DNA of 64,000 nucleotides from Salpingoeca rosetta (GCA_033442325.1 JAWQFM010000034.1:131882-195881), one strand, 5' to 3'; shown: positions 37,023-50,719, counted from the stretch's first letter. Program-made: numbers and translations. Notes: generated by a model not told the origin, from the letters alone.

Positions 37023-40000
37023 TTAGGTGACGTTTTTGCCGTAGGTTTTGTCTGGGGGCCGCAGCAGCGAGGGGAGGTGGTTCTGAATACGAAACAGCGG
37101 TGGTCGCGGTATTGAGACATGGTATGGATGCAAAGGAAACACGCAAGCGCACACTCAAATAAAATCCCATGTAGGAACACAGATGCAGACGCAGAGACAG
37201 ACGGAGACAGACACAGACACAGACGCACACACACACACACACACACCCACACACCCACACCCACACACACACACACACACCTCGACTTGGTCTTTGTCAA
37301 ATGCAAATACGGATTTCCCAGTGTTCTTCACGACATTTTCGCGACGAACGCCACTGCAAGGGGGAGGGTGATGATAGTGGTGATGATGGTGGTGGTGAAG
37401 GAAGACGTGAAGGTGTGCGCACGACAGCAATAGACGGAACGTGCACGCGCTCAGCACACACGCACAAACGCACACATGCACGCATACACATGCACGCACA
37501 CACAAGTACGCACACACACACACAGAGTCATCCAAAGGTTGACGCACTGTGTTCGCATTTGCTTGAGCATCTCGCGGAATTGGGAGAAGTGGAGGTGGTG
37601 GTGGCGCACAAGTTGGCATGCCTGATGCAGCGTAACCAGCATGGCTGTAATACCGGTTGTGGGAACGGATGGATGGTGGTGTGATGGTTGTTGGTGAGAA
37701 CACAAGCATCAACAATGTAAGTCACACTGCAACCGTTGATTGCGAGGGTAAAACATCTCCACCATCACCAGCGCAACCACCAGCGCCACCAGCATAACTG
37801 ACCTGTCCTGTCCTTTGCGCTCTTGCACGAGGCGACTGTGATGCCATGGAGCATGTTGGTGAGTTCCTCCACCGCCGTCAGCAGCGCGATGTTCTTCTCG
37901 CCGGTTGTGCTCAGCTCGGCCTCCAGTCCATCCAGCAGCTGCCCAATCGTCTCCTCCCTGCACACATTCACACGCACACACACACACACACACACATTTA
38001 CACACATTTACACACACACACACACATGAGCAAGCATGCAAGAGCGTGGTTTGTTCGCGTGTGTCAGCATGCGCGCGTGCGTATGTGTATGCGGAGTTGC
38101 ACATGCGTAAATGTGCCAGTCAAGGCACGCGCCACCTGAACAGTAATGCTCACACCACCACCACCACCACCACCACCACCACCACCACCGCCTCGACTTC
38201 CACAACGATCATCACCCTCATCATCATCACGTCACCTCTTTGCAATCTGTGCGCGTTGGAGCTGTTCGCCCTCGCCGTCAAGTGCGGCCGACCGCTGGCA
38301 CAGATGCGCACGCACGCGCGAGCAAAATTCCTGCAGCAGTTTGCTGTCGGTGATCATGATCGTGACATGGTGATGGTGGTGGCAGTGAAGGTGGTGGTGG
38401 TCATTTGGCAGTGGTGGGCGGATGCTTCATGTGAGCGAGTGAACGCCGTGCTATGGTGAAGCGAGCATCAACCCCACGTACACATACATGGTCACAAGCA
38501 AGACAAGACACACGTCACTGCGTCCTCGTTCACAAACGTCAACGAGTGGCAAACGCCACGTCGACCTCCAGCGTCACCATCATCACTCCACTTTCATCCC
38601 CCCAACACACACACACACACACACACACACACACACACACACACACACACACACACACACACACACACACACACACACACACACACACACACACGCGCGC
38701 GCGCGCGCGCGCAAGTGCTCACAAGTTGCGTTCGTTGATGTCGTCTTGGTACCCTATGCCCTGCAGGGCGTTTGCAAGTGTCTGTACTTCGTTCACCCCC
38801 TGCGTGAACAGCACAGCGGTCACGGACAGCCAGCGCCCAGCGCGCACATCAGACGACAACAGTGCGAAGATGGTCTTGTCGACAAACAGCGTCACGTGTG
38901 GTGACAAGCGTGAGCCTGTCAGCTTGAAGCGTTGGTCTGGCGATTGGCCAGAGGAGGATGGGGAGGTGATTGTGGTGGTTGCGTTTGTTTGGGAGGGGGG
39001 GTGTGAGCGAAGGAGAGATGTGTAGTCCCTTGAACGTGGAGCCACTCTCATAACGGCACATATGAATACAACACGACACAACACAACACAACACAACACA
39101 ACACAACACAACACAACACACAACACACGTGCAAAACACAGCACAAGCACGAAAAACACATGAACACATGCACAACCACAAACACAACAGCACACCACAA
39201 CACTATCCCCCTCTACCTGCGGCGAGTGTGTCCTGCGTGTGCTTCTGAAAGGAGACGGTCACGCGATTCAAACGCTCGACTGCGTGATCGTGATCAGCCA
39301 GCATGCTCTGCTCAAAGTCGCCTGTGATGCACGCACGACATGGGGGGGGGGGAGGCAACGGTCAGGAGACGTGTTTTTTGGGGGGGGGGGGATGCAGTCA
39401 TGTGAGTGAGTTGTGAGGAAAAGTGGCGCTGTGTACAAATGTACGCGAAAGAGTGCATGTATGTGTGTGAAAGTGACAAGGTGCACCACCTTTCCTCATC
39501 CCACAATCGCTACCATCATCATCATCATCATCATCATCATCATCATCATCATCATCATCATCATCATCATCATCATCATCATCATCATCATCATCATCAT
39601 CATCATCATCATCATCATCATCATCATCATCATCCAGGAATGAGTGAATGACCTGTGCTGACGAGAGATTGGAAGCAGATGAACACGCCGTGAGTACAGA
39701 TTGCTTCCAGCCAGGCATCTGATGTAGCCTTGGCCGCAACCACTCGAGACAACGTCGTCTATTCAATGATAATGGTGGGTGATGATGACCGTGATGGTGG
39801 TGATGGTGATGATGGTGATACGCTGGTCGTGAGTATGTTGACGAGATGACTGCTGCGCGATTCTCTGAAACAACGCACAGCTCCCACTGCCACCACCACT
39901 GCAACTACAACATCATCATCACCACGACCACCACCGCCCCACGACCACCACCCCCAATACGTACGGCGAGCTGCGTCACGAGGCATGAGACGAGGGTTGA

Positions 40001-49000: not shown

Positions 49001-50719
49001 GGTGGTGGTGGGAGGTGGTTTGTACGTTACGGGGTGAAGGTGGAGTGATAGGTGCGATTGCGATTACAGTACTGGTGAGAGCATGTCAGCATATGAAGCA
49101 CTTGTAAGTGCGCGACACGGGCAGTAAAAACACACACACACACGTACATGCACATCAATTTGCACAGACACATGTACGCATGTACGCACCAAGCGCCTCC
49201 TGTGTTTTCGCGTCATGTGGCGGTTCTGTTGCTTTGAGCAGTTCCTACAGTGATGATGATGATGATGGTCATGATGATTTGGTCGTGGTTGACAAGGAGG
49301 AGGAGGTACAACAAGCAGTCGCCACAACTTACCCCACCAACTACCAATCAACATATCAAGCCACGCCAATCATCAACTACGCATCACAGCAATCGCCACC
49401 TTGAGAAGGAGCGGGTATTTGCAGATGCGCTGAATGACAGATAGCAGATATGACTCCAGGTTCAACTTGGACTTGCTCAGCAGTTGGCATGACTGTATGC
49501 ACACACATGCACGCAGGTACACATACACGTACACACGCACACATGCACACATGTATCGAGGTGAGCTGTGTGACCGAGATGGCCACGGTTGGGGACTGGC
49601 GAGCAGACTTCAGAACGCAACACTGTTTCCAAACCAATCGCTCTCAACGCTCACAGTCACACACACACACACACACACACACACACACACACACACACAC
49701 ACACACACACACACACACACACACACACACACACACACACACACAATACATGGGACATGCTTTCACCTTGATGTGGGCGCATGCAGTTGGTGTCGAGACA
49801 AGCTCATACAGCAGCGCCACGCTCCCCTCCTGTTGGGCGAAACGAGGTCCGGTGAGGAACGCATTGGACAGCCGTAGCAAGGGTGCGGACAAGGAAAGCG
49901 CATGCCACACACACACACACACACACACACACACACACACACACACACGCACGCACGCACGCACGCACACACATACATACACACACGCACGCATACACAT
50001 GCGCACAAACAGACGTACGTGGTGGTTGCAGAACTTGGTGTAGATGAGGAACCCGTCACGCTGAAGGGGAAGTGACGGAGGAGGGTTGTGAGGAAAGGAA
50101 GCAGAAGTCGGGATCACAACATCAAGGACAAATACCTGATGCAAGCCACTCTCACACATCAAAACAGTCTCACTCCTCCTCTCTGCGTAGCCATCAGTAC
50201 GCACGTTGTCCAGCAAGACTTGCTCCAGGGCACCGGTGACTTCGGCAGCGTTGGAGTCTTCAAATGCCTTCAGCAGACGTGTGTGGAATGCCAAGATCTC
50301 CTCCACGTTCCTGCATACAAAGGCATGTCATCACAAGAAGGTCATGTCGTGCTCTCGTCACCACAAGTGCGCATGTGAACATGAACATGGCATTTGTCAT
50401 GCACGAGCATTGAGTGCAAACACAAAACAGCTCACAGGAAGATGCGGTCCATCACATCCGGGGGAAACTCGGGCTCATCCTTGAGCTTGTCAATGTAGCA
50501 CTGCCAGCACAGGACGAAGCATTCGTGTGAGGAGGCGTGGTTGTTCACGGCCACACTCAAGACAGAACCCAACGCGATTGCCACACTAACCAGCTCACAC
50601 ACCTGCGCACACGCACACACACACACACACACCTTCTTCACGAGGGAGAGACCCGTGACATAGTCGCGTTCCGTGTTCACCAGCTCTTGCAACACAAGCT
50701 CACGCTTGGGCGGGCCCAT
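37023..50719 (-). CDS. PREX: P-Rex-like Rac GEF: DH-PH-DEP-DEP-PDZ-INPP4(IP4P), more than 30 exons
   Basis: DH: [53 protein letters not shown]: [43 protein letters not shown]1: [24 protein letters not shown]2: [35 protein letters not shown]: [31 protein letters not shown]4: [64 protein letters not shown]. Confidence 0.93.

Follow-up and report, generated by a model that had tools for sequence, protein, structure and literature searches.

A predicted P-Rex orthologue with an INPP4-type catalytic signature in the choanoflagellate Salpingoeca rosetta

Introduction

Does a choanoflagellate relative of P-Rex preserve a working form of the phosphatase domain that appears silent in its vertebrate counterparts? 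The question is raised by PTSG_10315 (P0025), a Salpingoeca rosetta gene annotated as a "hypothetical protein". Much work has gone into P-Rex1 and P-Rex2 as drivers of neutrophil migration and metastasis, and half of each protein consists of an IP4P domain for which, to our knowledge, no activity has been detected despite repeated attempts. An ancestral P-Rex with both exchange and phosphatase functions, if it existed, would explain why the family carries a dead phosphatase domain. The standard review describes P-Rex as vertebrate-only and 'absent from invertebrates' (PMC4601503), and our literature search found no paper describing a choanoflagellate P-Rex with an INPP4-type signature. We examined the gene within the window, by which we mean the whole 64,000-nucleotide stretch of S. 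rosetta DNA that was analysed (GCA_033442325.1 JAWQFM010000034.1:131882-195881).

Results

On the minus strand, the gene model begins at 50719 and ends at 37023, in exact agreement with the NCBI protein PTSG_10315, and P0025 maps back onto this stretch at 100% identity, both by tblastn and by an exact spliced mapping that reproduces all 1406 amino acids from 39 exons with GT-AG at every intron (Table 1). Stranded RNA reads show transcript from the minus strand only over 41500-44100; across the PDZ-to-IP4P boundary, the splice joints 43714/43463, 43390/43171 and 43063/42871 were read directly in two stranded runs, at 4-9 reads per joint and run, and in two contig sets. A 1340-nt transcript contig spans from upstream of 44086 to 42583, the joint 41928/41775 is likewise present in RNA, and reads and contigs together connect the DEP, PDZ and IP4P exons. 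The sole break between transcript contigs (42457-42583) is a masked poly-Asp coding repeat within exon 23, a single open exon (42871-42494) that both contigs enter. The same architecture occurs as single complete ORFs in de novo transcripts of Microstomoeca, Hartaetosiga and S. urceolata. A first-pass annotation had drawn one minus-strand model running DH-PH-DEP-DEP-PDZ into a full INPP4-type domain, and had raised the prospect of separate GEF and INPP4 transcripts; the mapping and the RNA bear out the single model and join the two halves. PTSG_10315 is one expressed gene, with the GEF and INPP4-type halves in one polypeptide.

Table 1. Coordinates of PTSG_10315 and its features, counted from the first nucleotide of the window.
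Feature	Residues and exons	Position	Strand	Evidence
Whole coding region		37023..50719	-	tblastn, exact spliced mapping, stranded RNA reads
DH (RhoGEF)	aa 9-181, exons 1-8	48825..50695	-	Pfam PF00621, 125 bits; alignment to human P-Rex1
PH	aa 212-336	47592..48734	-	Pfam PF22697 and PF00169; alignment-column check
Tandem DEP	DEP1 about aa 391-466, DEP2 aa 498-563	45254..47429	-	Pfam PF00610, 134 bits, two stretches
Single PDZ	aa 594-662	43419..44657	-	Pfam PF00595 and PF17820, one stretch only
PDZ-to-IP4P boundary	exons 20-23	42494..43752	-	raw stranded RNA reads, transcript contig
IP4P (INPP4-type phosphatase) domain	aa 672-1406, exons 22-39	37026..43391	-	homology to INPP4-type proteins and P-Rex1; AlphaFold/Foldseek
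FKSS...FLPTNLH block	aa 871-890	41753..41964	-	alignment; joint 41928/41775 in RNA
GVNEVQ, INPP4 near-invariant G-x-N-E-x-Q motif	aa 1218-1223	38782..38799	-	alignment
P loop CKSAKDRT	aa 1323-1330, end of exon 36	37804..37827	-	translation; same loop in INPP4-type P0029, P0035 and P0040
INPP4-type C-terminal loop (KNTG..AF..Q), aligned with the P-Rex1 TI-loop region	aa 1372-1381	37299..37328	-	alignment
RPPDKTYGK		37032-37058	-	spliced product

Having placed both halves in one protein, we asked to which family it belongs. Pfam identifies RhoGEF, PH (64 bits), two DEP domains and one PDZ, both on exon-bearing ORF pieces and on the full protein. Human P-Rex1 aligns with E 1.6e-123, colinearly over residues 7-655 and again over 1110-1374, with E 1e-104 for the 650-residue colinear part; the runner-up family, ARHGEF4, reaches 169 bits only. 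Among the matches listed from a search of 5.8 billion proteins, the best outside the choanoflagellates are vertebrate P-Rex1 and P-Rex2, and P-Rex proteins are also the nearest ESM Atlas clusters. Alignment to PDB sequences shows the DEP pair to be colinear with P-Rex1 and DEPTOR, and the PDZ segment to match both PDZ domains of human P-Rex1; PTSG_10315 has one PDZ, as do the other choanoflagellate orthologues, whereas the vertebrate proteins have two. When P-Rex1 of Pan troglodytes (P0102, a stand-in with the same length and residue numbering as the human protein) was searched against the S. rosetta genome, the tiny exons of PTSG_10315 were outscored by other GEFs whose DH domain lies in a single exon. 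In a separate single-exon query of representative proteins, the Hartaetosiga orthologue was matched, leading to PTSG_10315, and the window's own protein was not among the matches.

Residues tied to exchange activity and lipid sensing are also conserved. In P-Rex1, the catalytic GEF residues are Glu56 and Asn238, both replaced in the GEF-dead mutant E56A/N238A (PMC4601503). Glu12 and Asn181 of the S. rosetta protein align with them, and are found in every choanoflagellate and vertebrate row that covers the column. In the PH domain, Lys223, Arg237 and Lys316 align with P-Rex1 Lys280, Arg289 and Lys368, the basic residues that bind PIP3/IP4; all three are kept in 10 of 10 rows. The P-Rex-like label of the first-pass annotation is upheld by the P-Rex1 alignment, the 5.8-billion-protein search and the Foldseek comparison below, and its Rac-GEF reading agrees with the conserved catalytic and basic residues. 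That PTSG_10315 truly belongs to the P-Rex family and bears an INPP4-type signature is almost certain, and we take it to be the choanoflagellate orthologue of these PIP3-dependent Rac exchangers.

The C-terminal half yielded zero matches when its exon pieces were run against Pfam, and single exons, being too short, gave no P-Rex or INPP4 match in the PDB. At full length, this half matches P-Rex1 residues 1326-1600 in sequence. An AlphaFold model of residues 570-1406 (pLDDT 81.5) returned P-Rex1 as the top Foldseek matches (7syf, 8tua and 6pcv; 1e-22), followed by the inositol phosphatase SopB (E 1e-4) and, more weakly, SidF and SidP. On superposition, the predicted module of DEP2 linker, PDZ and IP4P fits P-Rex1 best, and the modelled C-terminal half adopts the fold of the P-Rex1 IP4P domain. 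The bacterial proteins share the phosphatase core fold, a distant likeness of structure only, and lack a GEF module.

Inspection of this domain revealed the P loop of INPP4A/B-type proteins, identical over all eight residues. The codon after its Thr is split by a phase-1 intron (donor G/GT at 37803, acceptor ...ACAG/CC at 37644), and splicing yields Ala followed by MLVTLHQAC. The loop, its phase-1 splice, its INPP4A/B-type character and the retention of flanking INPP4 blocks had all been put forward in the first-pass annotation; translation, exon map and alignment agree with it, and every block that it quoted lies in the spliced product. Within the FKSS block, Ser874 and Lys877 match the INPP4 residues, and the P-loop Cys lies 84 residues from the C-terminus, compared with 81-84 in most INPP4-type rows. 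Chance does not account for an exact INPP4 P loop that sits at the homologous position with matching C-terminal spacing. Of 61 sites near-invariant in INPP4, PTSG_10315 keeps 52 (85%), near the bottom of the range for INPP4; genuine INPP4-type proteins that had been left out keep 71-100%, with a median of about 92%. Two departures from INPP4A, INPP4B and the protist PH-INPP4 proteins stand out. Two near-invariant arginines just before the P loop (Arg829 and Arg835 of P0029) are Asn and Thr in S. rosetta, in columns that vary in other choanoflagellate P-Rex proteins; and in place of the lipid-targeting C2 or PH domain that, at the N-terminus of INPP4, directly precedes the phosphatase region, PTSG_10315 has a complete Rac-GEF module, its PH domain belonging to the DH-PH tandem. 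The marks of a P-Rex-type pseudophosphatase, namely loss of two Lys and the Asp together with GxNExQ and AF..Q, are absent, and every one of these residues is present. On alignment, then, the C-terminal half carries the full INPP4 signature: CKSAKDRT, GxNExQ, KNTG..AF..Q and the 52 sites.

Vertebrate P-Rex1 and P-Rex2 have the domain order DH-PH-DEP-DEP-PDZ-IP4P, the GEF residues, the PH basic residues and the DEP2-PDZ-IP4P fold in common with the S. rosetta protein, and place the CX5R Cys and Arg at the same position; they are longer (about 1600-1660 residues, against 1406 with shorter inserts in S. rosetta). Where S. rosetta has CKSAKDRT, the Cys and Arg persist in 114 of 114 vertebrate P-Rex clusters, but both Lys and the Asp are gone (CGTGMQRS or CNSGVHRC). 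The G-x-N-E-x-Q position reads A/V-x-E-N/S-x-E in vertebrates, the A-F-x-x-x-Q part of the C-terminal loop is deleted, and in the FKSS block Ala stands at the Ser874 position while the Lys877 position varies (Lys, Glu, Arg, Ser, Thr). The first-pass annotation had called the animal loop degenerate. This is not so for the CX5R pair itself, P-Rex1 Cys1583 and Arg1589 having been termed a 'canonical' motif (PMC6795519, PMC11668296), but it holds for the Asp and both Lys of the P loop, as well as for two other INPP4 motifs. The two lysines have been tied to robust activity in INPP4A, PTEN, SidF and SidP, and in SidF the catalytic Asp is located inside the P loop (PMC6795519).

Among choanoflagellates, CKS[AG]KDRT is found in the P-Rex proteins of five of five species that span several craspedid genera: S. 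rosetta, Microstomoeca, Hartaetosiga, S. urceolata and Monosiga. Choanoflagellate P-Rex proteins keep 77-87% of the 61 near-invariant sites, and vertebrate P-Rex proteins 54-64%. A further relative from Mylnosiga fluctuans (P0070) combines DH-PH-DEP-DEP-PDZ with a homologous IP4P-like C-terminal half, whose P loop (CGNGGQLC) lacks Lys, Asp and Arg and whose other INPP4 motifs are lost; the protein also contains an inserted SH3 domain. Mylnosiga is an independent pseudophosphatase version in which the motif was lost separately. Since the other motifs decay wherever the P-loop motif is lost, in vertebrates as in Mylnosiga, their joint retention in the remaining choanoflagellate P-Rex proteins suggests selection.

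We next examined the descent of the domain. The IP4P tree joins animal INPP4, PH-INPP4, choanoflagellate P-Rex and vertebrate P-Rex in a four-way fork without resolution, with a vertebrate stem branch three times longer (1.99 versus 0.64); one clade uniting all P-Rex IP4P domains is not rejected by an AU test (p = 0.36). Whether the fusion had one origin is neither established nor contradicted by the domain tree. The alignment and tree, proposed in the first-pass annotation as a means of mapping motif loss, show the motif altered in vertebrate P-Rex and in Mylnosiga, without resolving the choanoflagellate and vertebrate groups as sisters. Among the matches listed in our homology searches, which were mostly vertebrate or limited by a word pre-filter and so give a weak negative, none was a RhoGEF and IP4P protein from outside choanoflagellates and vertebrates.

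Discussion

A reading slightly less likely than not, at a probability of roughly 45%, is that ancestral P-Rex was bifunctional, a PIP3-gated Rac-GEF joined to a working PI(3,4)P2 4-phosphatase; that choanoflagellates still make this form; and that catalysis was given up in vertebrates and separately in Mylnosiga, the vertebrate TI loop and C-terminus becoming the G-beta-gamma site. For the IP4P domain of PTSG_10315 taken by itself, the conserved residues tip the balance slightly towards a working Cys-dependent 4-phosphatase for PI(3,4)P2 or related inositol phosphates. Paired with the GEF module, such a phosphatase would clear a 3-phosphoinositide from the very membrane site at which PIP3 gates Rac activation, an arrangement that the first-pass annotation had proposed as a built-in feedback module. 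In vertebrates, the pseudophosphatase domain would descend from an active domain of this kind, with its active-site region remodelled and its TI-loop/C-terminal region turned into a docking surface for G-beta-gamma. A role for the TI loop in P-Rex1 has been described, and the last 34 residues of the vertebrate tail are needed for G-beta-gamma sensitivity (PMC6795519). In P-Rex1, this tail and the TI-loop region make up the G-beta-gamma site; their S. rosetta counterparts are, unlike the vertebrate tail, INPP4-like in the alignment, and G-beta-gamma control may differ from that of P-Rex1.

A serious competitor, though a less probable one, is that PTSG_10315 is a true P-Rex orthologue without turnover, its IP4P domain serving as an autoinhibitory or scaffolding core, or as a non-hydrolysing sensor that holds a 3- or 4-phosphorylated headgroup in a conserved pocket. 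Human P-Rex1 keeps the Cys, the Arg and a candidate Asp and is nevertheless inactive, with C1583A as control (PMC6795519); the CX5R motif alone is therefore no proof of catalysis. The P-Rex1 IP4P domain holds the DEP2 and PDZ domains together, and the same module is modelled confidently in S. rosetta. Retention of the domain in Mylnosiga after motif loss implies that IP4P has a non-catalytic role as well, and the two missing arginines ahead of the P loop point the same way. So does a stand-alone PH-INPP4 gene on another S. rosetta contig (C9), which could supply all 4-phosphatase activity. An initial search of the S. rosetta genome with its own protein had suggested PTSG_10315 as the only INPP4; a PH-INPP4 query found this second gene, making the fused P-Rex copy one of two. 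A pure scaffold, however, leaves unexplained the P-loop Lys, Lys, Asp and Thr, the GxNExQ motif and KNTG..AF..Q in five species, the same features having decayed in both lineages without the loop, and headgroup binding without catalysis still leaves the Cys to explain.

It is improbable that the GEF-INPP4 fusion arose separately in choanoflagellates and vertebrates, making the S. rosetta protein an analogue instead of an ancestor-like form. The four-group fork of the IP4P tree and the difference in PDZ number are in keeping with two fusions, as is the reported distribution: P-Rex is said to be missing from protostomes, ambulacrarians and cnidarians (PMC5499878), and together with the vertebrate-only account of PMC4601503 this would demand several losses under a single origin. 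PMC5499878, however, implies P-Rex in sponges and non-vertebrate chordates, and two fusions would have had to produce six types of domain in an identical order, the long colinear alignment with P-Rex1 and a module that superposes best on P-Rex1; nor does the AU test reject one P-Rex IP4P clade. That annotation falsely merged two adjacent genes, for which we found nothing in favour beyond the lone contig gap, is refuted for practical purposes by the position of that gap, by the splice joints in both RNA runs and both contig sets, and by orthologous single ORFs in four other transcriptomes.

A choanoflagellate orthologue that still has each of the INPP4 catalytic hallmarks missing from vertebrate P-Rex gives the IP4P domain a concrete and testable origin. 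It also suggests that, in the closest relatives of animals, a single protein may tie Rac activation to 3-phosphoinositide turnover; were the domain inactive, the finding would shrink to an orthologue with a conserved motif. The active-looking proteins of S. rosetta, Microstomoeca, Hartaetosiga, S. urceolata and Monosiga, set against the degenerate ones of Mylnosiga and vertebrates, also form a contrast set for how the INPP4 fold is silenced. S. rosetta is reportedly genetically tractable and editable by CRISPR, which would make a Cys-to-Ser allele feasible. Its genome also contains a class IA PI3K-like gene.

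GEF and INPP4-type halves are joined in one expressed gene

PTSG_10315 (P0025; NCBI "hypothetical protein PTSG_10315 [Salpingoeca rosetta]", 1406 aa) aligns to the window exon by exon with 100% identity, and its full sequence is recovered by exact spliced mapping over 39 exons, all separated by GT-AG introns. Its coding region coincides exactly with the gene limits proposed in the first-pass annotation, and translation of the bases assigned to the P loop (the CX5R catalytic loop) yields CKSAKDRT, as had been read there. The codon after this motif is split by an intron, with a G before the GT donor and an AG acceptor at 37644, so that the reading frame continues across the predicted splice. 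Because PTSG_10315 is annotated by NCBI, the gene is already in databases, without a name.

Features of the S. rosetta genome discussed in the text
Feature	Position	Strand	Basis
PTSG_10315 coding region	37023-50719 (ATG at 50719, stop 37023-37025)	-	exact spliced mapping
P loop CKSAKDRT	37804-37827	-	translation
Second INPP4-type gene, PH then phosphatase region	G000:C9:187752-197573; loci L007-L012, L014	+	PH-INPP4 match
PI3K-like gene, p85-binding domain then Ras-binding domain	G000:C12:1419454-1421408	+	exon matches

Surveyed from stop to stop, minus-strand positions 35000-53000 contain many short open pieces between introns rich in (GT)n/(CA)n, repeats that are abundant in introns throughout the gene. 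These pieces carry, in order, Pfam matches to RhoGEF, PH, DEP (three pieces) and PDZ; the INPP4-side pieces had no Pfam match, and single exons, being too short, had no match in the PDB. An exhaustive search with one INPP4-side exon retrieved P0002, a 1332-aa Hartaetosiga gracilis protein with RhoGEF-PH-DEP-PDZ and a C-terminal CKSGKDRT, and P0002 as query returned P0025.

That the GEF and INPP4 halves are two genes is effectively excluded, since RNA joints and contigs unite the DEP/PDZ exons with those of the INPP4-type phosphatase (IP4P) domain. In two stranded RNA-seq runs and two transcript-contig sets covering 41500-44100, read depth is restricted to predicted exons, with the orientation expected of minus-strand RNA, and 4-14 reads per run span each of the joints 43714/43463, 43390/43171, 43063/42871 and 41928/41775. 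With its start about 690 nt upstream of 44086, a contig of 1340 nt crosses the PDZ exons and reaches into IP4P exons 22-23; judged by exon lengths, its upstream part extends back over DEP2 and DEP1. Another, of 1817 nt, begins within exon 23 and extends 1462 nt past 41636, in agreement with 1434 nt of coding sequence still to come and a short 3' end. Contigs break only at 42457-42583, where a masked repeat encoding poly-Asp lies within a single open exon, exon 23. De novo transcripts from three further species carry the same architecture in complete single ORFs, which also argues against two genes (P0069 of Microstomoeca roanoka, 63% identical to P0025; P0002; and P0071 of Salpingoeca urceolata), as does the Monosiga brevicollis gene model P0072. 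PTSG_10315 is thus a real, expressed and fused gene, and the first-pass observation is correct.

The 42457-42583 repeat is GAT/GAC-rich, and its poly-Asp run sits in a disordered insert of the IP4P domain. Long trinucleotide repeats also adjoin the PDZ exons in the introns between exons 18 and 19 (44110-44580, minus strand), reading as poly-Gln, poly-Asn, poly-Met or poly-Asp by frame. The minus strand also has an open frame of 585 codons or more immediately upstream of the gene (51246-53000); it contains very long poly-Gln runs, ends about 520 bases short of the PTSG_10315 start codon and is presumably a separate gene. At 1144 aa the P0072 model (MONBRDRAFT_23984) is short; it has one DEP and no PDZ, and an insertion of 28 residues separates its AF..Q motif from the C-terminal LPxLLRPP. 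These oddities look like modelling errors, with exons missed and an intron retained, and not like a genuine divergence.

PTSG_10315 is a member of the P-Rex family

The P-Rex-like identity first assigned to the protein is supported by a PDB search, in which it matches human P-Rex1 with E 1.6e-123, colinearly over aa 7-655 (DH, PH, DEP1, DEP2, PDZ) and again over 1110-1374 in IP4P; the next-best family, ARHGEF4, scores 169 bits over DH-PH only. Among 5.8 billion proteins, vertebrate P-Rex1 and P-Rex2 are the best matches outside choanoflagellates, and P-Rex also supplies the nearest clusters in the ESM Atlas. Equivalents of the GEF-dead residue pair of P-Rex1, Glu56/Asn238 (PMC4601503), are conserved in the alignment, as are the PH basic residues aligned with Lys280, Arg289 and Lys368. 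When aa 570-1406 are modelled with AlphaFold (pLDDT 81.5, pTM 0.81), the closest Foldseek matches are P-Rex1 structures 7syf, 8tua and 6pcv (E 1e-22 to 5e-16); the inositol phosphatase SopB ranks after them (E 1e-4), and SidF and SidP are weaker. PTSG_10315 is therefore a P-Rex family member that departs from one family feature, having a single PDZ by Pfam where vertebrate P-Rex has two.

A survey of Dbl GEFs counts 13 in S. rosetta and gives the PREX branch as missing from protostomes, ambulacrarians and cnidarians (PMC5499878). A search of literature outside subscription journals found nothing on point about PTSG_10315 or choanoflagellate P-Rex with INPP4/pseudophosphatase.

An INPP4-type catalytic signature distinguishes PTSG_10315 from vertebrate P-Rex

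P-Rex1 retains a "canonical" CX5R with Cys1583 and Arg1589 (PMC6795519, PMC11668296); it also has a candidate Asp, and its activity is no higher than that of a C1583A control (PMC6795519). The earlier view of the animal loop as degenerate consequently fails for the Cys and Arg kept in P-Rex1, but holds for the two Lys and the Asp within the loop, all three absent from all 114 vertebrate P-Rex clusters fetched. Direct alignment places CGTGMQRS of P-Rex1 and CSSGVHRC of human P-Rex2 opposite CKSAKDRT; CKS[AG]KDRT occurs in five choanoflagellate P-Rex proteins, and CKS[AG]KDR[TS] in every INPP4-type protein fetched.

At 61 near-invariant alignment columns, defined by 88% or higher invariance among 26 INPP4-type proteins, choanoflagellate P-Rex proteins keep 77-87% of sites (52/61 in S. 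rosetta) and vertebrate P-Rex 54-64%; bona fide INPP4-type proteins that had been left out keep 71-100% (median about 92%). These differences concentrate in the P loop, the GxNExQ motif, the FKxS..K block and the C-terminal KNxG..AF..Q segment, part of which is deleted in vertebrate P-Rex. The INPP4-type catalytic signature of PTSG_10315 is found in no vertebrate P-Rex. As counter-evidence, P0025 has Asn and Thr in place of two near-invariant arginines that immediately precede the P loop in INPP4-type proteins. We place the probability that the signature confers phosphatase activity at about 0.55, because the example of P-Rex1 warns against equating a CX5R triad with catalysis.

Origin of the GEF-INPP4 fusion

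In a maximum-likelihood tree of 43 IP4P regions (562 columns), the P-Rex domains of the five choanoflagellates group together in one clade (100/100, stem 0.64), and those of vertebrates make up another on a very long stem (1.99), which fits a change of constraint. The tree leaves unsettled the fork between animal INPP4, PH-INPP4, choanoflagellate P-Rex and vertebrate P-Rex, and a tree with all P-Rex IP4P domains in one clade is not rejected by an AU test (p = 0.36); a single origin of the fusion, which the architecture favours, is accordingly compatible with the data but not proven. That the ancestral P-Rex was a bifunctional enzyme is an attractive and testable idea, to which we give slightly under an even chance.

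Phosphoinositide context and loop decay in Mylnosiga

The second INPP4-type gene of S. rosetta is orthologous to a Microstomoeca PH-INPP4 (P0026), and an intron splits its P loop immediately after CKSGK (L014:765-890), so the fused PTSG_10315 is not the only possible 4-phosphatase. A p85-binding and Ras-binding pair is typical of class IA PI3K catalytic subunits, which suggests that the PI3K-like gene encodes one and makes PIP3 synthesis plausible in this species.

Mylnosiga fluctuans P0070 (EukProt EP00047 P022565) is P-Rex-like, with the domains DH-PH-DEP-DEP-PDZ plus an SH3 insertion. In its IP4P-like half, CGNGGQLC occupies the P-loop position, and GxNExQ and KNTG..AF are both lost. Within choanoflagellates it is apparently a pseudophosphatase form that arose independently, and this second decay shows both that the IP4P domain has a non-catalytic role and that catalytic motifs are not retained by inertia.
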